Virus record (IMG/VR): IMGVR_UViG_3300049215_000771
Location: 62,001 to 126,000 of that record
DNA: 64,000 nt
Direction: 5' to 3' (one strand)
In this document: positions 715 to 61,582 of the stretch, in pieces
How positions within the stretch are numbered: position 1 is the stretch's first letter
Layout: each line of letters starts with the position of its first letter
The notes under the pieces: generated by a model
What the model was told of the DNA's origin: nothing
Database searches by the model: none
Seen by the model: only the letters and a program-made list of their open reading frames with translations
Translations under genes and position numbers: made by a program

Positions 715-987
715 ATGACCACCAAAGTCACCCAAGCGGAATGCGAAGAGGCCAGGCCCGTTTGTGATCTGGTCTACACTGTCATCAAGGATCACCCGGA
801 AGGGATCAATTATCCCGACCTGATCCGTGAAATCAGGCTGCGGGGATGCACGATTTCTGATCTTTCGGAGCGTGTGCATTTTTCGCTGCACTGTATGGTT
901 TGTCACGGGGTTTGCGATAGGCTGGAAGCGCCGACCCTGGAGCGTATCTACCAACTTCCGGCACTGGAGAAGAAGTCCAATGAGTAA
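715..987 (+). CDS. hypothetical protein, possible winged-helix
   Basis: 90-aa ORF after the promoter; LVYTVIKDHPEGINYPDLIREI resembles a wHTH start. Confidence 0.55.
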   Translation: MTTKVTQAECEEARPVCDLVYTVIKDHPEGINYPDLIREIRLRGCTISDLSERVHFSLHCMVCHGVCDRLEAPTLERIYQLPALEKKSNE

Positions 988-1778
988 GCGCAAGAATCAG
1001 TGGTTCGAGGAACGCAAGGTCCAGCAGCCGGCGACTGTTTGTCTTTGAGGCAGCCAACACCCTTCTCGTCGAACTTCAGTTCGGCGAAGGCGGCACGGAC
1101 TCAAAGCTGTTCGTTGCTGACCTTCTACTCACCTACCAACGCTACGCCGCCATCAAAGGCTTCAAGACAGAACTCCTCTCCGAAGAAAATGGCAAAGCCA
1201 TGCTCAAGGTGATGGGGAAGAATGTCTGGACGGCCTTCAAGAATGAACCCGGCAAGCACGTTGTTCAGCGTGTGCCTCCGACCGAGCGTTCGGGGCGGTG
1301 GCAAACATCTGTGATTTCCGTCGCCGTCCTGCCGCTGCCCCCGGAAAACAAGCTGGTTCCACTCCAAGAAAAAGACTTGGAAATTACCACGCAAACCGGC
1401 AAGCAGAAGGCGGGCGGACAAAACGTCAACAAAGTCGCCAGCGCCGTCAGGATGAAGCATAAGCCTACGGGTCTGTCTGTATTCATCAACGGGCGGGACC
1501 AAGGCCAGAACAAGAAGGAAGCCCTGCATGTTCTGACGGCCAGGGTCAACCAGCTTCGTCTCGACAAGACCGCCTCCGATTACGACAATCTGAGGACGGG
1601 ACAGATGAAGGGAATCGGCGACAAACTCGGTGGTAGGGGCGACAAGATTCGTACCTACAACTTCATCAAGTCGAGGGTGGTGGATCACAGACTCGGCGTG
1701 AAGACCGGAAACATCAAGGAAGTGATGAAGGGAAACCTCACACTCCTGTTCGACAGTCAAGAAAAAGATGAAGAATAA
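980..1778 (+). CDS. prfA: class I peptide chain release factor, RF1-like, lacking domain 1; predicted +1 frameshift at 1043-1049 (about 265 aa)
   Basis: GGQ motif (AGGQNVNK), VQRVPPTE (PxT) and RTYNF..RVVDHR. RF homology (LVELQFGEGGTDSKLF) continues upstream of ATG 1200 to 1047 with no in-frame ATG/GTG/TTG. ATG 980 (GGAG upstream) opens a 22-codon frame ending CTT TGA. Confidence 0.85.
1043..1049 (+). other. candidate programmed +1 ribosomal frameshift site CUU-UGA
   Basis: CTT(1043-1045) TGA(1046-1048); the +1 codon GAG at 1047 is in the RF frame. Same core as the prfB shift site, but no Shine-Dalgarno 3 nt upstream. Confidence 0.6.
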
Positions 1779-3258: not shown

Positions 3259-3735
3259 ATGCACGTTGGCGATTTTTTCCGGGGTGTGGCCCGGTTTATT
3301 GACGAGAAGTTTGTACACTACGCTGGCAGGCCGCTGGTACACTACAGGCTCCTGCCGGTCAGTGTCAAACATGATGCGGACGGGTTGTATTACCCTGAGT
3401 CCACCGAGAAGAAGTGGGAAAACAAACCTACCTTTCTGCGAGGTTTTTACGAGATTCCTGTCTCGACAGCGACCGGCCAGTTTGGTATTGATGCACCAGA
3501 CGAAATGCTTGTTGAGTTGGGATTTAACGACACTGTGAAGGCGCTCGGCAAAGTTCCTGGCATCGGCGATCTCTTCCTGGATTGCAACCATGACAAGTGG
3601 ATTGTCGTCCAAAGAAGCAGAAAAGATGACATGGTGCGAGGCCAAAACCGCCTGATTTTGACAGTTTGTCGGTTCCAGGAGTCTGTGACTACGGGAGGCA
3701 AGCAAGATGTCGAACATCATCAAGGAACTGTATGA
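3259..3735 (+). CDS. hypothetical protein, resembles T4 gp14-like neck/head-completion proteins
   Basis: ATG 3259 after GGAGG; LYYPE...QFGID..DE...GKVPGIGDLF pattern recalled from neck proteins. Confidence 0.4.
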   Translation: MHVGDFFRGVARFIDEKFVHYAGRPLVHYRLLPVSVKHDADGLYYPESTEKKWENKPTFLRGFYEIPVSTATGQFGIDAPDEMLVELGFNDTVKALGKVPGIGDLFLDCNHDKWIVVQRSRKDDMVRGQNRLILTVCRFQESVTTGGKQDVEHHQGTV

Positions 3736-4846
3736 CAAGGGACTGGCAAGCTGTGGCGGACATCACTGGATGCCCGACAACATGCACTACATCACGATGA
3801 TGGGTTCGGTCGCCTACGGCGTCAGCAACGACACATCCGACACCGACATTTACTCCTTCTGCATCCCGCCGAAGGACAACTTGTTCCCGCACCTTCGGGG
3901 CGAGATCGTCGGGTTCGGCGATGCCAAGCACGCCAACAACAGGTTCCGCAACCATCAGCAGCATCACGTCAAGGATGTTGGCGCTGAGAAGGAGTACGAT
4001 CTCAACGTCTACAACATCGTTGACTACTTCCAGTTGGTGATGGAAAACAACCCGAACATGATCGACAGTTTGTTCACTCCGCAGTTCTGTGTTCTGCACA
4101 GTACCCGGATCGGCCAGATGGTTCGTGAGGCTCGGAAAACTTTCCTTCACCGTGGCGCATGGCACGCCTTCAAGGGCTACAGCTATGCTCAACTGAAAAA
4201 GATGAGGCCGGGCGAGGAATTGGTCTGCCCGGAGTGTGAGCAGATCAGCAAGGGGTGGCATTCCAAGGACAACAAGTTCGAGGTTGCCTACGCCTTGATG
4301 CTCGACTTGTGGGCAGCCCTGGAGCGTGACCAGGGAACTTTGACGGACGAGGAACTGGACAAGTATTGCTTTTACTGTGCCAAGTCCAGGAAGGTTTCCA
4401 AGCTGGAGAAGCAGAAGGTCAACCGGCGTGTCGGGAAGCGAAAGGAATCTGTCGAGAAGTACGGATTCGACCCGAAATTCGCCTACCACGTTGTTCGGCT
4501 CCTGGGTGAAATCGAACAGATTCTCACCGAGGGTGACATCGACCTGCAACGGAACCGTGAGCAACTGAAGTCCATCCGGCGTGGCGAATGGACTCTCGAA
4601 CAAATCGAGAGTTACTTCGCCGACAAGGAACCCCAGCTTGAAACTCTCTACAACGAGAACAAGGCTGGGTTGCCGTGGGGTCCGAAGGACGGGGACTTGC
4701 AGAAGAACGTCAAGCAGCTTCTTTTCCATTGCCTGGAAGAACACTACGGTTCGCTTGACAAGTGTGTGGTCAATGTCGATGCCGCCGCAAACGCCCTTCG
4801 GGAGATCGAGGGAATCGTCGCTCGTTACAGAAAGGCGCTTGCATGA
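3707..4846 (+). CDS. Pol-beta superfamily nucleotidyltransferase (RlaP/PF10127-like)
   Basis: GSVAYGVSNDTSDTDI, NNPNMIDSLF, KFAYHVVRLL. Confidence 0.8.
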   Translation: MSNIIKELYDKGLASCGGHHWMPDNMHYITMMGSVAYGVSNDTSDTDIYSFCIPPKDNLFPHLRGEIVGFGDAKHANNRFRNHQQHHVKDVGAEKEYDLNVYNIVDYFQLVMENNPNMIDSLFTPQFCVLHSTRIGQMVREARKTFLHRGAWHAFKGYSYAQLKKMRPGEELVCPECEQISKGWHSKDNKFEVAYALMLDLWAALERDQGTLTDEELDKYCFYCAKSRKVSKLEKQKVNRRVGKRKESVEKYGFDPKFAYHVVRLLGEIEQILTEGDIDLQRNREQLKSIRRGEWTLEQIESYFADKEPQLETLYNENKAGLPWGPKDGDLQKNVKQLLFHCLEEHYGSLDKCVVNVDAAANALREIEGIVARYRKALA

Positions 4847-11792: not shown

Positions 11793-11821
11793 TTTACAAC
11801 TCACGGTTTGCGGGGTATCAT
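11793..11821 (+). promoter_or_regulatory. sigma70-type promoter
   Basis: TTTACA-17-TATCAT. Confidence 0.7.
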
Positions 11822-12580: not shown

Positions 12581-13882
12581 ATGTCTTCGGACAAAAACGA
12601 AGCCGGCGTGGAATTGCCGGATGGCATTACGCATCTGCATGGTGCCATGTATCTGGTCCGGTTCAACTTGCTGCAAGTGCCGGACCCGGACGCCAAGTGC
12701 GGCGACGAGGCCAACAAGGAGTACGAATTCCGCAACCCCAGGACGCTCACCGAGAAGGGCCAATCGGTCCTGTTCGATAAGCAGAAGTCGCAGGAGATGC
12801 GGGATTCCATCAGGGAGAAGACTCTGCTCACGCCTTTCATCTGCCGCTGGAAGAACAAGGCGGTCCAGATGGTTGGGGGCGAGCGGCGGCATCGGGCGGT
12901 GTCGTGGCTGATCCACAAGAAGGAGATGGTCAAAGACCCCCGCTCGCTCAAGTTCAACGACGACATGGAGCCGCAGTACGATTACAGTCCTGCGGACCAG
13001 GTGTACGAATTCGTCCTGTGTCAAATCTACCATGCCTCCAACGATCTGGATGCTTTGGCTCTCGCTTACACGGAGAATGACTGCCGTGTGAATCAGGGGC
13101 CGGGGCACGACATCGCTATGGTGTTGGAACTCCGCAAGTGCGGTGCTTCCGACGAGAAGATCATGGGGGTGATGTCGAAGGACGAGAAGTGGTTGCGGGA
13201 TACCGACAACCTCATCGCCGGCCTCGACGAGTCCACGTTGCGTGACGTGATCGAGGACACCATCGACCGTGAAGCCGCCCTCGAACTCCTTCCCATCAAG
13301 GAGAAGTTCAATGAGGAAGTCACGGCGAAGGTGAAGGAAGTCGCCAAAGACCTGGCCGACAAAGACTACAAGAAGCGATTCGAGCGTCTGACCAAGCGTC
13401 TGACCGAGGCCCGTGACGAACAGGAGATCGCCGAAGGCAATGTCGCTGATTCTTCTTTCCGCTCCGATGCCCAACAAGCTGAGGATCAGGAGAGCCTGAC
13501 GGAAGCTACGGCCAAGGTGCAACGCATCGCCAAAGACCGTGCCGGCGACAAGCCCAAGGTGACGCCTGGCAATGTCCGCAGTGGTCTGCGGGTCATTGTC
13601 GGCGAAGGTGAGTCCGAGGACGGCGAAGGGACTGCCGCTCCTTCTGGTGGTGCCCGCCCGCCGACTCAACCCAAGGCGTTGCGATACGCCAAGATCAAGG
13701 AAGCCTATATCGACGTTCTGGATGATCTGGTGAAGAAGGGCGGCAAACACCCGGAGTTCAAGGAATTCACCGCTTCGCCTGATGCCTGCAAGCTGGCGAA
13801 GAAGCTGATCTCGGCGCTGGCGACGGGAGACAGCGAGTGCATCGAGATCATTCGCCTTCACTACAAGGGGCTTTCTGGATGA
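12581..13882 (+). CDS. ParB/Srx-like N-terminal domain protein with coiled-coil C-terminus
   Basis: SIREKTLLTPFICR...QMVGGERRHRAV; GAGGAG RBS. Confidence 0.65.
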   Translation: MSSDKNEAGVELPDGITHLHGAMYLVRFNLLQVPDPDAKCGDEANKEYEFRNPRTLTEKGQSVLFDKQKSQEMRDSIREKTLLTPFICRWKNKAVQMVGGERRHRAVSWLIHKKEMVKDPRSLKFNDDMEPQYDYSPADQVYEFVLCQIYHASNDLDALALAYTENDCRVNQGPGHDIAMVLELRKCGASDEKIMGVMSKDEKWLRDTDNLIAGLDESTLRDVIEDTIDREAALELLPIKEKFNEEVTAKVKEVAKDLADKDYKKRFERLTKRLTEARDEQEIAEGNVADSSFRSDAQQAEDQESLTEATAKVQRIAKDRAGDKPKVTPGNVRSGLRVIVGEGESEDGEGTAAPSGGARPPTQPKALRYAKIKEAYIDVLDDLVKKGGKHPEFKEFTASPDACKLAKKLISALATGDSECIEIIRLHYKGLSG

Positions 13883-18836: not shown

Positions 18837-18930
18837 GGAAGCGAATGCCGTCTGGTGTAGGCCGCAGTCTTCAAAACTGTTGTAGGGTGTGAACAACACT
18901 CTAGGAGGGTTCGATTCCCTTTCGCTTCCG
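18837..18930 (+). tRNA. selC: tRNA-Sec-like, anticodon UCA
   Basis: 8-bp acceptor GGAAGCGA/TCGCTTCC, 5-bp T stem with TTCGATT loop, TGGT D-loop, loop CTTCAAA (TCA at 18871-18873), 8-bp variable arm, G73; no encoded CCA. Confidence 0.85.
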
Positions 18931-27408: not shown

Positions 27409-27492
27409 GGGACCGTAGCTCAATGGTAGAGCAGGGGATTTGAATTGTGTCTCATAATCCCTTGGTTGCTGGTTCGAGTCCAGCCGGTCCCA
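27409..27492 (+). tRNA. tRNA(CAU), Ile2-like, with 12-nt insertion in the anticodon arm
   Basis: Acceptor GGGACCG/CGGTCCC, D stem GCTC/GAGC, T arm GCTGG-TTCGAGT-CCAGC; anticodon stem GGGGA/TCCCT encloses 19 nt instead of 7 (extra TTTGAATTGTGT, 27439-27450) before CTCATAA. Confidence 0.8.
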
Positions 27493-27503
27493 CAGGAGAT
27501 ACC

Positions 27504-29228: not shown

Positions 29229-30189
29229 AGGCACGCAACTGACCGTCAATGAGAATTCTTGTGATTGGCCCAGCACCAAGGACAAGAAGGAGTGGCTGTG
29301 TTCGGCGGCATTCCCGGCACCTGACAGTGCCGGGATTCGTCCTTTGTACATCACTGGTCGGGGCCGGGTAAAATCTACCTGGTTCGCATCCGGGTACGGA
29401 CCCACGGCCCTGGAAGCGGAAGATGCCTGTTGGGAAAATTACAACAGCATCATCAACTGCAAGCATGATCTTGAGAGGATCGCTCACGTCGATCTTCCCG
29501 ACGACCAGCCCAAGGTTTACTTGTTGGATGGTGATGCTGTTTGTAAAACGTGTCAATTGTATCTTCCTTTCTACTACATGGATGACCGGCTGCATAAGTC
29601 GATGTGCCTGGCCCATCGTGGACATGAACACCAGAAGCGGAAGTATGGCGACCGCCCTTACATCGTGCATCCCCGCCAGGTCTACACGAAAACTGCATTC
29701 TGGAAGCCGAAACGCCCGGAAGAAGAGCGCATCGTGATGGGTTGCGCCGCCTGGATGCACGACCTGAAAGAAGATTGTCAAAGCAAGGACTCCAACCCTT
29801 TCATCTCGGATGATGAGATGAGGGAAGCAGGCGGCGATCAATCGTTTCAGTTGGTGTACTGGCTCACGAACCCATCGAAAGGCGTGAAGAAGCCGAGGGC
29901 TTACCGGAAGCAGATGGATCGGGAGCATATCGCTGTTGCCCCGCACCCGGCGAAGATCATCAAGATGTTCGACCGTATCTGCAATCTGAATGATTTGTAC
30001 GAATGCAACGACATGGATTTCTTGGCTCTCTACGCCAGCGAGAGCCGGCTGTTGTGGGATGTCCTCAAGGATGCAGACGAGAAGCTGGCACGGGACATGC
30101 TCGCTGTGATCGAGCAAGTCGAGAGGAGAGCGCAAAATGGCATCAACACCAGGAGTTCGCAAGACCCACAAAATCTATCACAAGACTAA
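29209..30189 (+). CDS. HD-domain hydrolase, RelA/SpoT (Mesh1/SAH)-like, with extra N-terminal domain
   Basis: HQKRKYGDRPYIVHP, AAWMHDLKED, KMFDRICNL. Confidence 0.8.
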   Translation: MKKKWPEGTQLTVNENSCDWPSTKDKKEWLCSAAFPAPDSAGIRPLYITGRGRVKSTWFASGYGPTALEAEDACWENYNSIINCKHDLERIAHVDLPDDQPKVYLLDGDAVCKTCQLYLPFYYMDDRLHKSMCLAHRGHEHQKRKYGDRPYIVHPRQVYTKTAFWKPKRPEEERIVMGCAAWMHDLKEDCQSKDSNPFISDDEMREAGGDQSFQLVYWLTNPSKGVKKPRAYRKQMDREHIAVAPHPAKIIKMFDRICNLNDLYECNDMDFLALYASESRLLWDVLKDADEKLARDMLAVIEQVERRAQNGINTRSSQDPQNLSQD

Positions 30190-31348
30190 CCCCAACAGCT
30201 TGCCGAATCCCTACAATTGGGAACTTCGCATCAGGTTGTTGGACCAGGCCGGCGAATTTATCGAGATGGTCAGCCAGATCGCTGCATTCCGTCTCCTGAA
30301 AGGTGATGCCGCCGAACTGGTTCTTGTGAAGGAACCAACCATCCAGTTGAAGGTTCCTACTGAGGAGTGGCGACCCTTCGCTAAAGGTGCGCCTCAAAAG
30401 CACCAAGCGAAGTGGCACAACTGGTTGCACGCCCGCCGCACCATCTTGTACGGCAATTATCACATCTTGTCTCCTGAAGGCCATCTGATGTTCCATTGCA
30501 ACAATCAGAAGGCTTTGTGGTATCTCAACCGTGACCTGGTTGAGATCGTCGCCCACGATCCGCCCACCCTCCAGTTGAAGTTTATTCCTGGCGGGCCGGG
30601 GCACGTCGGCGATGACTACTACCTGACTCCGAAGATCAATCGCTGTGTGGTCTGTGGTGGTACGAACGGCCTGAATCGCCATCACGTTGTTCCGAGTTGC
30701 TACAGACGCTACATGGGATTGGACATCAAAAGCCATTCCTACCACGACGTTTTGTTGTTGTGCCTGGATTGCCACGAGTCCTACGAGGTCGAGGCCAATA
30801 GGCTGAAACATGAGATCGGGGTGGAGTACAACTGCCCGACGCATTGCATCTACGACCGACAAACAGGCGAGATGGTGTTGTACGATCATGACAACGGCAG
30901 GGCCGTTCAAGCCGCCATCGCCCTGGTCCGCAACGGAGAACGGATTCCTGAACCCCGCCGCCAGGAGTTGATGTCCCATATCTCGTCATGGCTAGGCCGA
31001 GAGGCTACCCACGATGACGTGCTGGAAATTTCCAAGCGGGGGCATCGCCACAGGAAGATGGAAGGCTGCTACGACCACGGTGAATACATCGTCCGCCAGA
31101 TGAAAAATCTGGCAGATGTACAAAAATTCATCGAGCGATGGCGACATCACTTCCTGGCGGTGATGCAGCCCAAGTACCTGCCGGCGAATTGGGACGTGGA
31201 GAAGGCAATTCTGCCGGAAGATTACGAACCTATCGGCGGTTCGCTGAGTCTTCACCATGAGCGGAGCCGAGAGTACGAGGGTCCGAAGCGTCCTTATTGG
31301 AGGAATCCTGATGGGGATGGTCAAACACTACCTGATGGAATACTGTGA
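30137..31348 (+). CDS. HNH-like protein resembling the C-terminal domain of eukaryotic EXD2
   Basis: LYGNY.ILSPEG...KALWYL...YYL...CVVCG...HHVVP.CYRR...SHSYHDVLLLCLDCH; RWRHHFL..MQPKYLP. Confidence 0.7.
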   Translation: MASTPGVRKTHKIYHKTNPNSLPNPYNWELRIRLLDQAGEFIEMVSQIAAFRLLKGDAAELVLVKEPTIQLKVPTEEWRPFAKGAPQKHQAKWHNWLHARRTILYGNYHILSPEGHLMFHCNNQKALWYLNRDLVEIVAHDPPTLQLKFIPGGPGHVGDDYYLTPKINRCVVCGGTNGLNRHHVVPSCYRRYMGLDIKSHSYHDVLLLCLDCHESYEVEANRLKHEIGVEYNCPTHCIYDRQTGEMVLYDHDNGRAVQAAIALVRNGERIPEPRRQELMSHISSWLGREATHDDVLEISKRGHRHRKMEGCYDHGEYIVRQMKNLADVQKFIERWRHHFLAVMQPKYLPANWDVEKAILPEDYEPIGGSLSLHHERSREYEGPKRPYWRNPDGDGQTLPDGIL

Positions 31349-33694: not shown

Positions 33695-35356
33695 ATGGGA
33701 CGTAAACTCGAAAAGTCCACCTACCCATCCGGCCACGGCCCGAACGATTTCCAGTGTTTCGGCCCGCCCGCCACCGAAGACGGGAATTTCGACACCTGCA
33801 AGATCGCCGACATGGGTTCCTTCTCCCAAGAGGAGAAAGATTCCAACAAGTATTATCACGCCGCCGTCGTCAAGTCGAAGATCAACGGCAACTACTACAC
33901 CTACTTCGAGTGGGGCCGGGTCGGGGCGTCCAAACCTGCTTTCCAGTTTGTCGAGTGTGGCAGCGAGGCCGACGCCCAGCGGGAATTCGCCGATCAGTGC
34001 CACGAGAAGAACGACAAGCGTGGCGTTTGGACAACCGTGGCGGGCCATCGCACGCTGACGGCCAAACCCAAGAAGGACGTGTATCTCGTCCGCCAACTCG
34101 CCACCCGTTCCACGGGTCTGCCCGATGCCAAAACCATCAAGCACACTGAGGGCGCAAAGCCGAAGCCGAAGCCCGGCAAGCCCGACGATGCCAGCGCTAC
34201 CGACAAGCCGACGAAGAAGGAAGCGAAACCAGCGGCCCCAGCCCGTCGTGCCGATCCAGTCACCAGTAAATTGCTTCAGGATTTGATCGGCGGCACGATC
34301 TCCTACACCCGTGGGAGCATGGCCGACGACTCGATTCCGACGCAAAATGCCATCGACATCGCTCGTGATGTTCTCACCGAGGCCGAGAAGCGACTGTTGA
34401 AGGTCGGCAACAGCCTCGATGACCAGATCGCCGACAAGGAACTTCGCCAGTTGTCCGGGGAACTGTACCGTCGCATCCCGAAGAAGAAGCCGGTTGGGAC
34501 GCCGGACAAGGTGTGGATTCTGTCCAGCGAGAATATCTTCTCCTGGCGGAACGACCTGGACGCCTTCGAGTCGGCGTTGTCGGCCCAGGCCGGCATTGAC
34601 GAACAGGCCGGTCAGGTTGCCGATCCCTTCCACGGCCTGCCCCTCACGATGGAATACATCGACCCGAAAACGGAACTCGGCAAGTTCCTCTACTTCTGGT
34701 GGCCGAAGGCGACGGCCAATCGCCACTACCACCTGAAAGACATGAAGATCAAGAATATGTGGAAGGTGGACCGCTTCGGCGACCCGGAGAAGGTTCGCCG
34801 CTCGCAGGACCGCATCGCCACCGAGATCGGCAAGGCGGCGCTGAAGGAACGGCCCTTGTTCCAGCCGTCCGAACGCTACGATGTTCCCGACATCAACGAG
34901 CGCAAGCTGTTCGGTCAGACCAACACGGCGCTGTTGTTTCACGGCACCCGTTCCGTCAACGTGAAGGGCATCTTGGAGAAGTCGCTGTTGCTGCCGAAGC
35001 AACTGGTCGGCGTTTCCATCAACGGGGCCATGTTTGGCCCTGGTCTGTATTGGGCCGATGACTGGAAGAAGTCGGCAGGCTACACCAGCTTGTCGGGTTC
35101 GCTCTACTCGGCGGGCTATGGCGGGGTTGCCGGTCGCCATGCCTTCATGTTCGCCGCCGATGTCGTCGTGGGGCAGCCACACGTTGCTCCTGGGCCGCAC
35201 GGTTATACCAGCCCGCCGAAGGGCCATCACTGTGTCTTCGGTATGGGCCGCAACCACACCAGCAGCCGCCAGAACAGCGGCGTGGAGAACAACGAGTGGA
35301 TCGTGTTCTCCGGTGAACAGTGCCGTCTCCGCTACCTGGCGGAATTCACGGCGTAA
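33695..35356 (+). CDS. WGR-domain poly(ADP-ribose) polymerase-like ADP-ribosyltransferase
   Basis: FEWGRVG (WGR); helical regulatory segment LSGELYRRIP; catalytic LLFHGT (H), MFGPGLYWAD (Y), NNEWIVF (E). Confidence 0.9.
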   Translation: MGRKLEKSTYPSGHGPNDFQCFGPPATEDGNFDTCKIADMGSFSQEEKDSNKYYHAAVVKSKINGNYYTYFEWGRVGASKPAFQFVECGSEADAQREFADQCHEKNDKRGVWTTVAGHRTLTAKPKKDVYLVRQLATRSTGLPDAKTIKHTEGAKPKPKPGKPDDASATDKPTKKEAKPAAPARRADPVTSKLLQDLIGGTISYTRGSMADDSIPTQNAIDIARDVLTEAEKRLLKVGNSLDDQIADKELRQLSGELYRRIPKKKPVGTPDKVWILSSENIFSWRNDLDAFESALSAQAGIDEQAGQVADPFHGLPLTMEYIDPKTELGKFLYFWWPKATANRHYHLKDMKIKNMWKVDRFGDPEKVRRSQDRIATEIGKAALKERPLFQPSERYDVPDINERKLFGQTNTALLFHGTRSVNVKGILEKSLLLPKQLVGVSINGAMFGPGLYWADDWKKSAGYTSLSGSLYSAGYGGVAGRHAFMFAADVVVGQPHVAPGPHGYTSPPKGHHCVFGMGRNHTSSRQNSGVENNEWIVFSGEQCRLRYLAEFTA

Positions 35357-40224: not shown

Positions 40225-40253
40225 TTTACAAGGCATGATTCTTGGGGTATGAT
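40225..40253 (+). promoter_or_regulatory. sigma70-type promoter
   Basis: TTTACA-17-TATGAT. Confidence 0.7.
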
Positions 40254-40259
40254 ACAGCC

Positions 40260-41489
40260 ATGTTCAATCTCTCCGAGGCGCTGGAGGCTCTGAAGGGCCA
40301 CGACGAGTTTGCAATCAAGGCTTATGACGGCCTGGTTACGCTTGACTACATTTTATGCTTCCCAGGCTCGTTCGATGCCGCAGAAGCCGAAATCGTGGCT
40401 CGTGGAGAGGCACAGGCTCACCGGGATGCAGAAATTCGCCGGAACTGTCGAGGGGTGACTTTCGACGAAAAGACTGGCGAGATCGTGTCTTTGCCGCTGC
40501 ACAAGTTTTTCAACATCGGCCAGACCGAGCAAACGCAGTTCCGCCACTTAACGTCCTGCAAGGCACGGATTTACGAGAAGATGGATGGTTCGATGATCCA
40601 CTTCTTCGTCCACCCGCACCGTCAGGAGTTGCTGGCGTCCACCTGCCGCTCGACGCAAACGCCCCAGGCGCAGGAGTCGCTGGGGCTGGCGAAGAAGAAC
40701 CAGCTTGTCTACGGCAAGATTCTCGCTATCATCGGTGAGGGTTGGACTCCGGTTTTCGAGTACGTCGCTGCACACAACCAGATCGTGGTGCAATATCCAC
40801 GTCCCCGGTTGGTGTATCTGATCTCTCGTCACCGGAAGACGGGCGAGTATAAGTTCCACGAAGGGTTCCCGGATACGGCAACGTATTTTGAGTTTCCCTT
40901 CCAGGACATCAACAACTACTTGGACCGCAAGGAATTCGAGGGCTACGTTTGCCACCTGGAATTCACGGAAGATGTTTCGTGCATCAAGGCGAAGAAGGGT
41001 GACAAGACGATTGTGAAGGCCAAGACGCCCTGGTACTTGGAGCGTCACCGGGCAGTGGATGCCCTGATGAGGCCGACCTACAAGTTGTACCAGGTCGTGT
41101 TCGATGGTGTCATGGACGACCTGTTGCCAACGGCTCCTGATCGGTTCAAGCCGAAGCTGGTTGGAATCTACGAAGAGGCGCAGCGTGATCTACTGAACGA
41201 GCAGCGCCGTGTTGAGAAGTTGTTCGATCTTTCGTTGGCGGCAGTGGAATCCGTTTGGAGCAGGACGTTCTCTCACGGAAAGCTGCCGGAACGCAAGATG
41301 GATCGGGTTCTCCGCAAGGCGTTCGTTGAGTACATCCAGCAGCACTACAAGTCGGATTTCTCTCTGCTGATGGCCCTGTATCTCGGCAATGACCCGTCTC
41401 CCACCATCAAGGACCGATTGATGGAAGGGTACAAGCTAAAGTACCCAAATCGGCTTTTTGCTGATTTGGAAGAAGAAGCTGTCGCATGA
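40260..41489 (+). CDS. T4 Rnl1-like RNA ligase
   Basis: CRGVTFD, LHKFFN, YEKMDGSMI, VFEY, EGYV, KAKTPWY. Confidence 0.88.
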   Translation: MFNLSEALEALKGHDEFAIKAYDGLVTLDYILCFPGSFDAAEAEIVARGEAQAHRDAEIRRNCRGVTFDEKTGEIVSLPLHKFFNIGQTEQTQFRHLTSCKARIYEKMDGSMIHFFVHPHRQELLASTCRSTQTPQAQESLGLAKKNQLVYGKILAIIGEGWTPVFEYVAAHNQIVVQYPRPRLVYLISRHRKTGEYKFHEGFPDTATYFEFPFQDINNYLDRKEFEGYVCHLEFTEDVSCIKAKKGDKTIVKAKTPWYLERHRAVDALMRPTYKLYQVVFDGVMDDLLPTAPDRFKPKLVGIYEEAQRDLLNEQRRVEKLFDLSLAAVESVWSRTFSHGKLPERKMDRVLRKAFVEYIQQHYKSDFSLLMALYLGNDPSPTIKDRLMEGYKLKYPNRLFADLEEEAVA

Positions 41490-54883: not shown

Positions 54884-55579
54884 ATGCAAGTCTGGCTTGA
54901 ACCTATTGAGATGGTCGGGGCATCAGTTCCGATCCCCGCCGTTCTCACACGAATTCAACTGGCGTGTTGTGATGCCGGGTTTCAAAGTCAGAAACTCAAC
55001 CAAATTCTCAATGAAGCCTGCATGGTCATGCCCGGCAATCTCGAACAAGCCAAGGGCAACTACGATCCTAGCGTTTACGCTATGGAGGTTATACAAACCG
55101 AGCGTATTCGAGTGGGATTTTTCGACAGGCTCCGTGATGCTCTCGATGAAGTTGCCCAGGCCGCTGGGGACACGATTGATTGGTGTCTGTTATTCATGGA
55201 TTACGACATCCATTTCGCTCGGCATGACGCCTTCGTGAACGGCCTGAAATGTTTTCCGTACTTGGAATGCTATCTTGTTGTCGCCGACGCCGACTCGCCA
55301 TTGATGAACAACTGGAGGAATCCACGGAAATTATCGGTACAAGTTATCACAGAGGCCACACTGCAAACAATGGCCCCCTCGATGGGTTTCCAGAATCCGA
55401 TTGGAATTCAAGGCATATTTGCGCAACAACCATTGCCGGCCCCAGCAGCGAGTGGTAATATGCCCGCTGTCTCGCCTTCTGGTTGGCTGAATGACTATGA
55501 AGACCCTGAAGAAGTGGAAGAAGTGGTCAAGCCACAACCAAAGCCCAAGACAAAATATCGGAGCATCGACGACCCGTGA
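54884..55579 (+). CDS. hypothetical protein with C-terminal YRSIDD motif
   Basis: Ends ...PKTKYRSIDDP; motif at 55556-55573. Confidence 0.65.
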   Translation: MQVWLEPIEMVGASVPIPAVLTRIQLACCDAGFQSQKLNQILNEACMVMPGNLEQAKGNYDPSVYAMEVIQTERIRVGFFDRLRDALDEVAQAAGDTIDWCLLFMDYDIHFARHDAFVNGLKCFPYLECYLVVADADSPLMNNWRNPRKLSVQVITEATLQTMAPSMGFQNPIGIQGIFAQQPLPAPAASGNMPAVSPSGWLNDYEDPEEVEEVVKPQPKPKTKYRSIDDP

Positions 55580-55589
55580 GGATTATGTC

Positions 55590-56207
55590 ATGTGGCGAAA
55601 ATTTATCTGGCTGCTTCGACGATTGATCGGGCGGAAACTGCCTCCTGCCCCTGCTACGCTGCCAAAAGGCACCAGATACTACAATCCCAATATCGAAGCA
55701 GGACGTTTCGGCGTCCTGGTTGTGGAGAAGGAACCGACACCGAGGACAATTTTCGGAGCAAGGGGGACGACGCATTACTTGGCGTTTCCGTATATTGTAT
55801 TTATCATTCGATTTTCGGTGCAGCATCGGAGCGGCAAGCCGGTGTATATTTTCGATCACCTGCAAGTTGGTTTCTCGATGACTTCATTGACTTCTGCCAA
55901 TGATTATATTTCTGCATTGCCGCTCTCAAATTACGAGGGCAGTTTGCCCCTTGGTGTGTGTTTGGGAGAAGGGCCAGCAAGGTACAGGCACAGTTACTCC
56001 AGTTACGATTCGCCCGAAGAAATGGCGAACTCAATCATCGCTTACTACTGGTCCAGTAGCTTCACGAAACTGCAACCTGAAGAAATGAAACGCTGGGCCA
56101 AGAAATCACCAGACAAGTTGTCCAAGTTGTTCTACAACACCGACACGCTGCGGCGGATTGCAATGCTTCCAAAACACGAGGAGTTGGGCTATGGGACACA
56201 GCACTGA
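55590..56207 (+). CDS. prokaryotic E2 (family D)-like protein
   Basis: EPTPRTIF...LAFPYIVF...LPLSNY....GVCLG. Confidence 0.45.
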   Translation: MWRKFIWLLRRLIGRKLPPAPATLPKGTRYYNPNIEAGRFGVLVVEKEPTPRTIFGARGTTHYLAFPYIVFIIRFSVQHRSGKPVYIFDHLQVGFSMTSLTSANDYISALPLSNYEGSLPLGVCLGEGPARYRHSYSSYDSPEEMANSIIAYYWSSSFTKLQPEEMKRWAKKSPDKLSKLFYNTDTLRRIAMLPKHEELGYGTQH

Positions 56208-56691
56208 GCAGCATGTTCGAGTCGGCACGAGCATCATCGTGGTTCGTGAGGGCAAGGTGTTGGCGGGCCGGCGAAAAGGGTCGCACGCCGAAGGTTTGAT
56301 CTCTTTCCCTGGCGGGCATCTCGATTTTGGTGAGACTTGGGAAAAATGTGCCTTCCGAGAACTCGAAGAAGAATGTGGGGACCAGTTACAGGTAAAGTTG
56401 AGGCCGCAAGCTAACATTGCCTCGCTTGGTCAGTCGCCGCCTGTCGGCCCACTAAGCTGGCGGCTGGACTGGTTCACTACGAACGACATCATGCCTCAGT
56501 ACGGCAAGCACTACATCACGATCTTCATGGTCGCTGATTGGGTTTCCGGGGAGGCTATCAATACCGAGCCTGACAAGTGTGAGGGCTGGGAATGGATCAC
56601 CTTCGACGAACTGAAGGCGCTGGGTGATAAGGCCGCTCAGTGGATTCCCATCAACCTCATCGAAGCCTACCGAGGAAGGATTGGCATATGA
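56191..56691 (+). CDS. Nudix hydrolase (MutT-like)
   Basis: FPGGHLDFGETWEKCAFRELEEECG; EPDKCEGWEW. Confidence 0.88.
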   Translation: MGHSTEQHVRVGTSIIVVREGKVLAGRRKGSHAEGLISFPGGHLDFGETWEKCAFRELEEECGDQLQVKLRPQANIASLGQSPPVGPLSWRLDWFTTNDIMPQYGKHYITIFMVADWVSGEAINTEPDKCEGWEWITFDELKALGDKAAQWIPINLIEAYRGRIGI

Positions 56692-58142: not shown

Positions 58143-58171
58143 TTTACAACCATACCGAAACGGGGTATTAT
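58143..58171 (+). promoter_or_regulatory. sigma70-type promoter
   Basis: TTTACA-17-TATTAT. Confidence 0.7.
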
Positions 58172-58190
58172 GCGGGAGGAGGACAGACCG

Positions 58191-58745
58191 ATGGATTTTG
58201 AGGTTCCCGCCAACGTCGAGATTCATAAGCAAGCCATTCCGGGCGGGTGGTCTTACCCGCTCAAAACCAGCGAGATTGTGACCGCCCTTGACCTGGGCGA
58301 TCTGGATAAGAAGATCGACATTTTTTATATGAACGACCGTCCAGGTCCAACCCTTCCTCGCAACCAGAAGAAATACCGCTCCGAGGGGTGGTTCAACATT
58401 TTTTCCATCACCTGGTATGGGCATATGCGTAAGTCCGAGATGCACTTCTTCATGGGTGTGCATCTTTGCAAGCCCAAGTACCGGCAGCGGCTCAACAAAA
58501 TCATCACAGAAGAAGTGTTCCCGGTCATTAAGCCCTGGATGAAAGATGTTGGGAGATTACCAAACATCAACAGCATCTCCCTCGACTATCACACCTTCTT
58601 CCCCAAACCCGGCGTGTACCAAAAACTGGAATGGGGTTTGGAACTGCGAGAGAACAAGGACCACCGCAAGTGGTTCAAAGTCATCGACCTGGACAAGAAG
58701 GAAGGCGAAGATGAAGGCGCAGAAGGGACAGTTCTGGCGACGTAA
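58191..58745 (+). CDS. hypothetical protein
   Basis: GGAGGA RBS. Confidence 0.6.
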   Translation: MDFEVPANVEIHKQAIPGGWSYPLKTSEIVTALDLGDLDKKIDIFYMNDRPGPTLPRNQKKYRSEGWFNIFSITWYGHMRKSEMHFFMGVHLCKPKYRQRLNKIITEEVFPVIKPWMKDVGRLPNINSISLDYHTFFPKPGVYQKLEWGLELRENKDHRKWFKVIDLDKKEGEDEGAEGTVLAT

Positions 58746-59148
58746 TCACGAGTGTATTTGGGTCCGTTTCGTTTTTGGTATTGAGGATGATACCGTTCAC
58801 TTCTTGGAATATCAACCCAATGGTGTCGTGCCATACCGTGGTTCCGAGAAGATGTACGAAGAAGACGAAGATTACCCTTCCTGGGTTCAGATCAGCGCCC
58901 CGGAAGCGGAGTTGTTGATTGTCAACATGAAGGATCAGGACACCGAGTACAGCTATCGCCTGGGGAAGAAGGCTGACGCCGAAAAATTGGCCCAGGCGTT
59001 GAAGATACTGGAACGGAAGAAGGTATCGTCGGTTTGTATCCGTGACAACGTGGTTCGTATATCGACCGACAACGGGGCAGAATACGAGATCGCTTTGACG
59101 AGGGATGGGTATTCGAGCAGGCAGACTGGCCTGCCTGACCCGTGGTGA
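58711..59148 (+). CDS. hypothetical protein
   Basis: MKAQKGQFWRRN... Confidence 0.55.
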   Translation: MKAQKGQFWRRNHECIWVRFVFGIEDDTVHFLEYQPNGVVPYRGSEKMYEEDEDYPSWVQISAPEAELLIVNMKDQDTEYSYRLGKKADAEKLAQALKILERKKVSSVCIRDNVVRISTDNGAEYEIALTRDGYSSRQTGLPDPW

Positions 59149-59157
59149 GGAAAAGCC

Positions 59158-59388
59158 ATGCCGAGGATTAAGTCGGGCGTTCAGAAGAAGCGCAAAAACT
59201 TCGATATTGCTGTCAAGCATCTCGATATGCTTGAGTATATCAAGAAGAAGCACAACATGGATTCTGACACGGAAGCCGTGCGTTGGTGCATTGCTCACAC
59301 TTTCTCCGTTGAAAAAATGGAGGAAGACAGCATCCAAATGCGGTTCGTAGATAAAGAAGGGAAAATTCGTGGAGTGATCTTCCTTTAA
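59158..59388 (+). CDS. small ribbon-helix-helix-like protein
   Basis: KNFDIAVKHLDMLEYIKKKHNMDSDTEAVRWCI. Confidence 0.5.
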   Translation: MPRIKSGVQKKRKNFDIAVKHLDMLEYIKKKHNMDSDTEAVRWCIAHTFSVEKMEEDSIQMRFVDKEGKIRGVIFL

Positions 59389-59392
59389 GACT

Positions 59393-59463
59393 GCCCCGTT
59401 GGTACATTGGCTGTGCCGTGGCCTCTAAAGCCACAGAAGTCGGTTCGATTCCGGCACGGGGTA
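59393..59463 (+). tRNA. amber suppressor tRNA, anticodon CUA (copy 1)
   Basis: GCCCCGT/ACGGGGT acceptor, GTGGC-CTCTAAA-GCCAC (CTA at 59425-59427), GTCGG-TTCGATT-CCGGC, A73. Confidence 0.85.
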
Positions 59464-59466
59464 CAA

Positions 59467-59539
59467 GCCCTGGTAGCTCAGTGGTCAGAGCGGTTGACTC
59501 TAAATCAACGTGTCGTGGGTTCGATCCCCACCCAGGGCG
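59467..59539 (+). tRNA. amber suppressor tRNA, anticodon CUA (copy 2)
   Basis: GCCCTGG/CCAGGGC acceptor, GCTC/GAGC D stem, GTTGA-CTCTAAA-TCAAC (CTA at 59500-59502), GTGGG-TTCGATC-CCCAC, G73. Confidence 0.88.
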
Positions 59540-59560
59540 CTGCATATCATAGGGAGGTTC

Positions 59561-59656
59561 ATGATGAGACTTCGTTTCCACGAACAGGTTCCCACTATTG
59601 GCGGTTCCTACAGCGGGTATCACGGCGGTTGGCGAACTTCCGAGTCGCTTCTTTAA
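59561..59656 (+). CDS. 31-aa ORF starting MMRLRF
   Basis: GGGAGG RBS; in frame with the next gene, separated by TAA. Confidence 0.4.
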   Translation: MMRLRFHEQVPTIGGSYSGYHGGWRTSESLL

Positions 59657-59665
59657 GGTCGTCCG

Positions 59666-60262
59666 ATGAGACTGAGATTCCAACACGACAATGTGGAGGA
59701 TGGCCAGGGCTGCGGTACAATTCTAAGTTTGGAACCACAGTTCCGTACCATCTACACAATGGGTAACGGGTATAGCACACGCAGTAGGTACGATGGAAAC
59801 ATTGTTACCCTGCCGTGGCCACATTTGATCTTTGTGTTTCGCTACACGAAGGTTGAGGGCGGCTATATGTATGGTGGTTTGTACGGCAACGGCCTGCGGG
59901 TGTTGTTGAAATCGGAGCCACTGCGCTCTTTCGATGACCTGGTGGCATACGCTCCTACCGAACATCACGGTGGAGGGCTGGCGTGTACCGATCATGGATG
60001 GGATAATTCCTTGTTCAAAAACCCACAGGAGTTGATGGGAACGATTCTGGAGATTTGGTGGGGGAGCGCCCATCACATGCGTCCGCCTCTCGACATTTCT
60101 GCATGGAAGAAGATGTCGGTAGAAGAAGTCGTAACCTACAAGTGGGGAGAAGTTGCCAAACTTTCTACCTTGCTGCCGTTTTCTGGCGAACTTATCGACA
60201 AGGACGTTGGTATTCTTCCAAGTGTGTTGAAAAAAGGACCGAAATTGTATGGCCGCAGATGA
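59666..60262 (+). CDS. prokaryotic E2 (family D)-like protein, paralog of 55590..56207
   Basis: LEPQFRTIY...LPWPHLIFVFRY...LAC. Confidence 0.4.
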   Translation: MRLRFQHDNVEDGQGCGTILSLEPQFRTIYTMGNGYSTRSRYDGNIVTLPWPHLIFVFRYTKVEGGYMYGGLYGNGLRVLLKSEPLRSFDDLVAYAPTEHHGGGLACTDHGWDNSLFKNPQELMGTILEIWWGSAHHMRPPLDISAWKKMSVEEVVTYKWGEVAKLSTLLPFSGELIDKDVGILPSVLKKGPKLYGRR

Positions 60263-60599
60263 TTGGGTTGGGAAACGCTTTCCAGAACCGCCTGAACGCC
60301 TCACCCGTCCATACTTTGACCCTGACCATGTTGGTCGGGGTTATTGTATGTACTGCCGTGACGATCACGACAGTCCCGGACCAGTTTTCATGTGGCGAGA
60401 TAACAACACCCTTCTTCTCAAGCCAGGCCACATGAACTGTGTTTTGTGTGGGCAGCGGTACTTCGCCGAACTTGAAGACTTGGAATTGTTGTGTGGTTTT
60501 CCGCCCACGATGAACAACATCTACGATTTCGAGACGATCTACGCCCGGTGGAAGGCTCGCTACCGTTCCATTGACGACCCCTGGCAATCCAGTTCTTAG
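60249..60599 (+). CDS. Zn-binding hypothetical protein with C-terminal YRSIDD motif (TAG stop)
   Basis: CMYC, CVLC; ends ...KARYRSIDDPWQSSS; motif at 60561-60578. Confidence 0.65.
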   Translation: MAADDWVGKRFPEPPERLTRPYFDPDHVGRGYCMYCRDDHDSPGPVFMWRDNNTLLLKPGHMNCVLCGQRYFAELEDLELLCGFPPTMNNIYDFETIYARWKARYRSIDDPWQSSS

Positions 60600-60634: not shown

Positions 60635-61582
60635 ATGAACGACAGGCGCAAAGGAACACTGATCGGCCTGGCGATTGGCGATGCTCTTGGAGCCGCCGTC
60701 GAATTTCGTGATCCAGGCACTTTCGCCCCCGTCACCTGTTATCGCAGCGGCGGGCCGCACAGTCTTGCTCCTGGGCAATGGACTGATGACACCAGCATGG
60801 CCCTGGCGCTGGCTGACAGCATCGGCGAGATGGGTTGGAATCTGCACGATCAGATGACCCGTTATGTCAAGTGGTGGCAAGAAGGTGAGTACGCTGTCAA
60901 CGGCTGGTGTTTCGACATCGGCGGGACGACGGCTTCCTCTCTCAGCAACTTCATGGAAACCAATCAGGTTGAAGGTTGCTCCGACCCCGGCGAAGATATG
61001 AGTGGCAATGGGTCCATCATGAGGCTGGCTCCCGTCGCCATCAAGTATTACGACTACTTCCCCAATCGAATCAGGGAGTTGTCGATGATCGCCGATGACT
61101 CCAGCCGTACCACGCACGCCAGTCCGCAATGCCGTTCGGCGTGTCGTGCCCTGGCAGTGATGCTTGCCGGCCTCATCAACGGCGAGAAGAAGGAAGTGGT
61201 GTTGGATACCGACAGTGGTTGGTATTTTCTTGCTGAATTGCACAACATCGAACCGCTGCACCCGAAGATTCTGGATGTTCTGAAGGGCAGCTACAAGACG
61301 AAGAATCCGCCCGAAATCAAGGGATCGGGTTGGGTTGTGCAAAGCCTGGAGGCGGCATTGTGGGCTTTCTACAACTCTGGCAGTTTTGAGGAAGCGGTGC
61401 TGAAAGCCGTCAACCTGGGGGATGACGCTGATACAACTGGCGCTGTGTGTGGACAACTTGCCGGCGCTTGTTGGGGCGAGAGTGGCATTCCTACGTCACT
61501 GTTGACGGGATTGGCTCGTCACGACATGCTCAACAAGGCGCTGGTCAGCTTGATGGGAGCAGAGAATGTCATTTCAGGGTAA
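60635..61582 (+). CDS. ADP-ribosylglycohydrolase (DraG/ARH family), second copy
   Basis: GLAIGDALG, WTDDTSM, GNGSIMRLAP, GDDADTT. Confidence 0.92.
   Translation: MNDRRKGTLIGLAIGDALGAAVEFRDPGTFAPVTCYRSGGPHSLAPGQWTDDTSMALALADSIGEMGWNLHDQMTRYVKWWQEGEYAVNGWCFDIGGTTASSLSNFMETNQVEGCSDPGEDMSGNGSIMRLAPVAIKYYDYFPNRIRELSMIADDSSRTTHASPQCRSACRALAVMLAGLINGEKKEVVLDTDSGWYFLAELHNIEPLHPKILDVLKGSYKTKNPPEIKGSGWVVQSLEAALWAFYNSGSFEEAVLKAVNLGDDADTTGAVCGQLAGACWGESGIPTSLLTGLARHDMLNKALVSLMGAENVISG

Follow-up and report, generated by a model that had tools for sequence, protein, structure and literature searches.

The translation of recoded genes is the current explanation for suppressor tRNAs encoded by phages. The locus described here raises the question of what such tRNAs might do in DNA that reads in the standard code: at positions 59393–59539 of a 64,000-nt stretch of phage DNA (hereafter the window), two tRNA genes with the anticodon CUA lie side by side. 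The window covers bases 62,001–126,000 of a single contig of 532,729 bp, which is classified as viral by IMG/VR and as complete by CheckV. The phage genome has a GC content of 52.7%, and 56 tRNA genes were called by ARAGORN genome-wide, four of them within the 64-kb window, including the two with the anticodon CUA. Genes for a T4-like (gp20-type) portal protein and a baseplate are present. A related portal is encoded by at least 143 IMG/VR contigs, and the nearest GenBank record is LR756511.1, an unannotated uncultured phage of 595 kb whose portal is 59% identical. The public sequencing runs containing the phage are moss metagenomes. Inside a second tRNA array, the genome encodes a full-length EF-Tu (genome c489871-491052, L202:1246-2427; NCBIfam match of 615 bits). 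The identity of this protein to the bacterial EF-Tu sequences found was only 58% to 65%, spread over many phyla, so that the attempt to infer the host from it was unsuccessful.

The two CUA tRNAs and their operon

Both genes are located on the plus strand and were detected by ARAGORN (59393–59464 and 59467–59540) as well as with the Rfam tRNA model RF00005 (gathering score 29), which was matched over its full length by tRNA 1 at 59393–59463 (50.2 bits) and by tRNA 2 at 59467–59539 (71.1 bits). The tRNAs differ in sequence and are separated by three nucleotides (CAA) between the discriminator base of tRNA 1 and G1 of tRNA 2; every checkable detail of this arrangement in the original prediction turned out to be accurate. 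The D-loop GG and the T-loop UUCGA are common to both, and so is the seven-nucleotide anticodon loop C-U-CUA-A-A with U33 and A37. The structural features of an amber suppressor are thus present in each: the 7-nt loop carries the anticodon CUA, which is preceded by U33 and followed by a purine (position 37). The bodies are different: tRNA 1 has a G1·U72 wobble pair, A73, and a variable loop of 4 nt, and tRNA 2 has a Lys/Asn-like body with G73 and a variable loop of 5 nt. CCA is encoded by neither of them.

ARAGORN labeled both genes as "Pyl" on no other ground than their anticodon. tRNA-Pyl has a short D-loop lacking G18G19, no T-psi-C sequence, a 3-nt variable loop, and an elongated anticodon stem. 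The CUA anticodon is the sole likeness of the two phage tRNAs to this type, from which they are set apart by their standard D- and T-loops and their variable loops of 4 and 5 nt. Moreover, the best match in a PylS search of the phage genome reached 31.6 bits against a cut-off of 178. The earlier argument against tRNA-Pyl, based on the canonical loops, is thus upheld. A third CUA call in the genome (c491736-491826, 91 nt) was rejected; it has G33, the T-loop sequence TATCGAA, a long variable arm, and no Rfam match, and it is probably a degenerate gene of the Leu/Ser type. In gut phages, suppressor tRNAs linked to theta ribozymes are known, which have such an HDV-like element next to the tRNA; here, ribozyme families gave no match within 59100–59800 at E-values up to 1 with a library that may be devoid of a theta ribozyme model.

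The amino acid identity was approached by sequence comparison. For tRNA 2, the best database matches were phage tRNA-Lys (88.7% and 86.7% identity) and phage tRNA-Asn (83.9%). Compared with tRNAs of the same phage, it is 81% identical to tRNA-Asn(GUU) and 74% identical to tRNA-Lys(CUU) after removal of a 21-nt insertion in the anticodon loop of the latter. The database matches of tRNA 1 were weak and mixed, none of them being informative. With the phage's own tRNA-Glu(CUC), it shares 64% identity overall, G1·U72, A73, the 4-nt variable loop, the anticodon loop pattern C-U-CUx-A-A, and six of seven acceptor pairs, the seventh being compensated. These few common features make a Glu-like nature of tRNA 1 conceivable; the assignment is tentative because the Arg tRNAs of the phage have the same acceptor stem. 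The codon UAG is one base away from AAG, GAG, and CAG, and a change at position 36 is all that separates the corresponding anticodons CUU, CUC, and CUG from CUA. In E. coli, many tRNAs with the anticodon CUA are charged by GlnRS or LysRS regardless of their body. It is possible that two different residues would be inserted at UAG. The phage encodes a GluRS (genome 49112–50442, plus strand), a LysRS (c248120-249673), and an AspRS (c450169-451833). Three tRNA genes of the phage carry anticodon-loop insertions of 14 to 21 nt: a tRNA-Phe(GAA) at 27409–27493 of the window, a tRNA-Lys(CUU) at 13184–13278 of the genome, and one without assignment at 55504–55586 of the genome, the last two being listed by ARAGORN with 4-base anticodons.

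The transcriptional unit containing the tRNAs is headed by a sigma-70-like promoter found in a promoter scan (TTTACA-N17-TATTAT, 58143–58171, plus strand). The phage motif to which it belongs, TTTACA-N17-TATNAT, has 22 strict copies in the genome; in most of these, the −35 element is TTTACAA, and G(T/G)GG often stands ahead of the −10 element. All 22 copies are located at 8–250 kb or 472–504 kb of the genome and none in the structural region at 250–470 kb. Additional copies in the window are found at 11793, 15860, 17887, 32595, and 40225; one precedes the true start of the GluRS gene by approximately 30 nt, and another lies just ahead of the LysRS gene. Judged by this distribution, the promoter at 58143–58171 is predicted to belong to an early or non-structural class.

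The first gene of the unit (58170–58745, plus strand, 191 amino acids) was identified as an ORF with a supporting coding score and has no NCBIfam match; the second gene ends at 59148. It is followed by an ORF of 76 amino acids (59158–59388, plus strand; no family match), whose TAA stop codon is located 4 nt ahead of tRNA 1. Downstream of tRNA 2, an ORF of 31 codons (59562–59657, plus strand) precedes a gene for a protein of 198 amino acids (59666–60262, plus strand; no family match). The 31-codon ORF begins with 18 nucleotides (59563–59580) that recur as a direct repeat of 83% identity at 59665–59682, where the downstream gene starts (MRLRF...); the repeat and the short ORF may be the scar of a tRNA-cassette insertion. 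None of the proteins of the unit could be assigned to a known family in the protein family search. The operon shows no synteny to relatives, and its neighbor genes are without homologs in IMG/VR. Scans of IMG/VR for the exact pattern of either tRNA, in which the anticodon was left free, found nothing, and no relatives of the downstream 198-amino-acid protein were found there. Because these scans were empty, the exact operon is traceable only to a near-identical strain. A contig from an independent moss DNA run spans 58339–59517 with no differences and with both anticodons unchanged. Metatranscriptome contigs from two runs match 58330–58667 and 59667–59958 without differences and thus cover the genes that flank the tRNA pair; they fit a transcription of the unit, but could also originate from contaminating DNA. 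Mature tRNAs are not expected in metatranscriptome libraries of this type.

The phage genome uses the standard code

The original prediction suggested, among other things, that the tRNAs decode TAG-containing late genes elsewhere in the genome. This did not hold. Using a codon-usage model trained on the long ORFs of the genome, code 11 gave a coverage of 85.7% and a total score of 27,679 for the whole genome, compared with 84.2% and 26,309 when TAG was read as sense. In a test based on length only, code 11 was favored in every 20-kb bin, and nowhere in the genome was a block of low coding density rescued by reading TAG as sense. The claim that the region itself reads in code 11 was therefore correct and can be extended to the genome. 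The structural block contains intact ORFs of 4,553, 2,048, and 1,043 amino acids, and the portal and baseplate genes are intact as well. In comparison with two relatives, a 527-kb genome (G004, approximately 49,000 aligned residues) and a 223-kb genome (G002, approximately 47,000), no internal TAG was found by best-HSP tblastn. Stop codons in these alignments were confined to the first or last few residues, where the alignments overrun the gene ends, and no alignment extended past a TAG. Thus, the phage genome is a standard-code genome and not TAG-recoded. Of a code-change module, which would combine in-frame TAG codons, a coding density restored by reading TAG as sense, and an RF2-type factor sparing UAG, nothing was found; the release factor encoded by the phage is of the RF1 type.

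TAG is a normal stop codon in this phage. The genome-wide usage is 362 TGA, 249 TAA, and 112 TAG, so that TAG accounts for approximately 15% of the stops in early and late regions alike. Within the window, 8 of 89 called genes end in TAG, close to the 7 of roughly 95 counted before. In-frame continuations after TAG are neither longer nor more coding-like than those after the other stops (8 of 114 for TAG, 27 of 362 for TGA, and 38 of 248 for TAA). The distance to the next in-frame stop is equal after all three codons, and there is no excess of backup stops. A best-of-six-frames filter and the best-HSP filter were applied against antisense "shadow" frames. After the former, only six TAG codons had a coding signal in the same frame on both sides, and behind each of the six lies a promoter, a tRNA, or a start codon that has its own ribosome-binding site.

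The RF1-type release factor and other stop-reading elements

At the beginning of the window (980–1778, plus strand), the phage encodes a release factor that lacks domain 1 and contains the PCRF and RF-1 domains. With 212 bits for prfA versus 152 bits for prfB and the motifs PPT, GGQ, and RTYNF, it is an RF1-type factor, as the original prediction had implied, and differs from the RF2 described for TAG-recoded phages. No start codon is found in its frame from 984 to 1200. The 22-codon ORF that starts with the ATG at 980 terminates at TGT CTT TGA G; by slipping +1 on CTT T, ribosomes would enter the release factor frame. The factor is apparently produced via a +1 frameshift at CTT TGA G (1043–1049). 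Two prfB-like sites in succession, AGGGGG-TGT-CTT-TAG-C and AGGGGG-TGC-CTT-TAG-C, lie ahead of the homolog in G004 (c100173-101000, 53% identity), and the homolog in LR756511.1 (c413870-414700) likewise has two, first CTT TAA C and then CTT TGA C. Because such shift sites precede the homologs in both phages, a programmed frameshift is supported. In a 2025 survey of 12,753 bacterial genomes, prfA was reported to be free of programmed frameshifts, and TAG was not among the stop codons at prfB shift sites. The frameshift-gated RF1 of these phages looks like a new arrangement, and it represents a lead separate from that of the tRNAs.

In the genome of the window and in LR756511.1, both of which possess a canonical CUA tRNA, the stop codons at the shift sites are TGA or TAA; in G004, both sites have TAG. 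This pattern is as would be expected if the suppressors were active, but three genomes prove nothing. Adjacent CUA and UUA calls in G004 (c167265-167425, 1 nt apart) are both non-canonical or malformed and are regarded as doubtful. Release factor homologs were also observed in two other huge phages with tandem CUA tRNAs, G008 (c194461-195117) and G010 (29997–30626; loci L327 and L328). A single in-frame TGA is located in each of them approximately 35 codons after the start, at an identical position of the alignment, which in bacterial release factors is often Trp or Phe. In G008, a tRNA is located immediately upstream of the release factor gene.

As a second type of stop-reading tRNA in this genome, a tRNA-Sec-like gene with the anticodon UCA was called by ARAGORN at 18837–18930 of the window (plus strand) and scored 76.5 bits with the Rfam model for tRNA-Sec (gathering score 47). 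Neither SelA nor SelD nor SelB was found in the phage genome; the tRNA may use the machinery of the host or may act as an opal suppressor. In an unrelated phage of 529 kb (G001), a canonical ochre-type UUA tRNA (123254–123328) and a tmRNA (175160–175517) were observed.

CUA tRNAs in other phages and the possible role of the pair

IMG/VR was scanned with a gapped pattern consisting of two CTCTAAA loops with GGTTCGA between them, and 26 loci were matched. In 19 of these, corresponding to approximately 17 distinct contigs, ARAGORN confirmed a tandem CUA–CUA arrangement with varied tRNA bodies, so that such pairs occur on at least 17 other IMG/VR contigs. Some of the contigs, among them L218 and L224, have a higher local coding density with TAG as sense and look locally TAG-recoded. 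Four are complete or nearly complete huge phages of 343 to 578 kb, whose portal genes are free of internal stops. For two of these four phages, both complete (G007 and G009, loci L331–L366; 343 and 350 kb), code 11 scores best. TAG terminates 23 of 450 and 8 of 439 of their genes, respectively (5% and 2%, versus approximately 15% in the genome of the window), and no release factor homolog was detected in either of them. This phage and at least two further huge phages with complete genomes carry paired amber suppressors and have nothing of their own that these would need to decode.

Single homologs of tRNA 2, in contrast to the pair described here, are present in the cultured jumbo phage Xanthomonas phage Xoo-sp13 (MN047793.1, 36791–36866, unannotated) and in the uncultured huge phage LR756511.1 (c179588-179661). 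Compensatory stem changes are seen in both homologs. The Xoo-sp13 tRNA(CUA) has 80.9% identity to tRNA 2; the D- and T-arms and the anticodon loop agree fully, and two acceptor pairs are compensated. Unlike tRNA 2, it comes with an encoded CCA and carries A73. The literature offers no report of a function. In an alignment of eight CUA tRNAs, 97.6% of the stem cells were paired and compensatory changes were seen in 14 of 21 stem pairs, which, since the set was chosen from existing tRNA calls, shows only that these genes are maintained and have not decayed.

Laboratory amber suppressors such as supE, supF, and derivatives of tRNA-Lys or tRNA-Glu consist of an elongator body that acquired CUA by one or two base changes. 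The phage tRNAs differ from these in being natural, paired, and phage-borne, and in being accompanied by a GluRS, a LysRS, an EF-Tu, and an RF1 of the phage. With the TAG-recoded phages (Lak, crAss-like phages, and the clades of Borges et al.), they share the position of CUA tRNAs in a region that is readable in the standard code; the differences are the absence of in-frame TAG, the use of TAG as a normal stop, the GC content of 53%, and a release factor of the RF1 type instead of the RF2 reported alongside recoded phages (Borges et al. 2021/2022). Closer in one respect is an example from the Agate clade, which carries a suppressor with no change of the code (Borges et al.). That case concerns a gut phage of low GC content near recoded relatives, with only one suppressor, which is specific for TGA, whereas here two distinct UAG suppressors are found in a 533-kb environmental phage whose examined relatives use the standard code. 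The paper on huge phages that first described such genomes mentions RF1 and RF2, but not suppressors, and occasional suppressor tRNAs in standard-code phages were already noted by Borges et al. We found no paper that deals with pairs of different amber suppressors in huge phages without recoding, or with the combination of such pairs with an RF1.

The reading that we favor, while giving it slightly less than an even chance, is that the two genes encode functional amber suppressors in a standard-code huge phage and cause a partial read-through of UAG that is opposed by the phage RF1. Since the genes of the phage need no suppressor, the effect would be a modulation of termination and not a change of the code. 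Early transcription from a sigma-70-like promoter of the host type would yield a polycistronic RNA, out of which the tRNAs would be cleaved by RNase P together with the enzymes of 3′ processing; their CCA would be added post-transcriptionally. Charging might be performed by host synthetases or by those of the phage, with Gln, Lys, and Glu as candidate residues because the C34 anticodons for these amino acids differ from CUA only at position 36. In the infected cell, the charged tRNAs would compete with RF1 at UAG, and some ribosomes would read through. A possible aminoacylation and activity at UAG are supported indirectly by the intact tRNA structures, the setting in an operon, and the phage genes for GluRS, LysRS, and EF-Tu. 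The phage RF1-type factor, whose synthesis would depend on a frameshift at a stop codon, may counteract the suppressors and protect the TAG-terminated genes of the phage. It is unlikely that two unrelated CUA bodies came to lie side by side by drift, and the same tandem arrangement recurs in IMG/VR. The TAG frequency of approximately 15%, the missing backup-stop signal, and the 5% and 2% found in the other two phages suggest a suppression that is weak, recent, or strongly countered. As for the purpose, host-directed interference is the leading guess. Laboratory E. coli tolerates strong amber suppression, which weakens a host-killing role.

The main rival, and in our estimation a rather unlikely one, is that the pair is a way station with little present function: in a genome containing dozens of tRNA genes, single-base changes from CUC or CUU to CUA would have been tolerated, either as a first step toward TAG recoding or as a remnant of a return from it. 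It is favored by the fact that this genome does not avoid TAG; with a normal TAG frequency and no surplus of backup stops, no adaptation to suppression is visible. The non-syntenic position of the operon and the lack of IMG/VR homologs of its neighbor genes point in the same direction, and standard-code phages with an acquired suppressor tRNA have been read as preceding a code change (Borges et al.). The published route, however, begins at low GC and with rare TAG codons, whereas the present genome has 53% GC and approximately 15% TAG. Furthermore, two bodies with one anticodon, intact cloverleaves, and the tandem recurrence in non-recoded huge phages argue for selection.

A more elaborate form of the favored reading, which we regard as quite unlikely in its entirety, is a UAG "rheostat". 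Here, paired suppressors of two amino acid identities, expressed early and charged by the phage GluRS and LysRS, would be set against the frameshift-gated RF1, so that termination would be reprogrammed during infection to the advantage of the phage while the code stays unchanged, and the stop codon at the shift site would co-vary with the suppressors.

Improbable is a programmed read-through that yields C-terminally extended isoforms of a few specific TAG-ended phage proteins. Candidates would be available, as approximately 112 genes are predicted to end in TAG, one of them in the same operon (60249–60599). Nevertheless, the continuations after TAG (8 of 114) do not exceed those after TGA (27 of 362) and TAA (38 of 248) in length or coding character, the six flanked TAG codons lead into a start codon, promoter, or tRNA, and no relative aligns beyond a TAG.

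Very improbable is a non-decoding or inactive state, in which the tRNAs would be decoys or substrates for host enzymes acting on Lys- or Glu-type tRNAs, or processing signals of the operon. Anticodon nucleases favor Lys, Glu, and Gln tRNAs as targets, and the window encodes two RNA-repair proteins, a T4 Rnl1-type RNA ligase (40242–41489) and RlaP (3707–4846), which would suit such a role. The tRNA sequences, on the other hand, show no departure from those of decoding tRNAs, and the decoding-type anticodon loop is conserved in the homologs. Finally, a hidden partial recoding, in which the tRNAs decode in-frame TAG codons of late, structural, or lysis genes, the known task of CUA tRNAs in recoded phages such as Lak and crAss-like phages, is hardly tenable given the better score of code 11 (85.7% versus 84.2% coverage), the absence of internal TAG codons in approximately 96,000 aligned residues, the intact portal, baseplate, and giant structural ORFs, and the lack of any block rescued by TAG as sense.

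Two explanations offer themselves: suppression by phage tRNAs may have a second use, such as the manipulation of hosts or competitors or the tuning of termination, or the first step of codon reassignment may be far more common and more stable than assumed. The Xoo-sp13 homolog makes this question testable at the bench in a cultured phage. The pair may also be of interest in searches for natural orthogonal tRNA–synthetase sets.

Besides the two RNA-repair genes, the window contains genes encoding a PARP-like protein with a WGR domain (33695–35356), a Nudix hydrolase (56158–56691), and an ADP-ribosylglycohydrolase-like protein (60635–61582), the last of which was named from sequence motifs with no database match behind the name. 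It was via this protein that G001 was reached; as a close relative, G001 was ruled out with 29 of 724 genes matching. Together, the five genes suggest that functions in ADP-ribose handling and tRNA repair are encoded near the suppressor operon.
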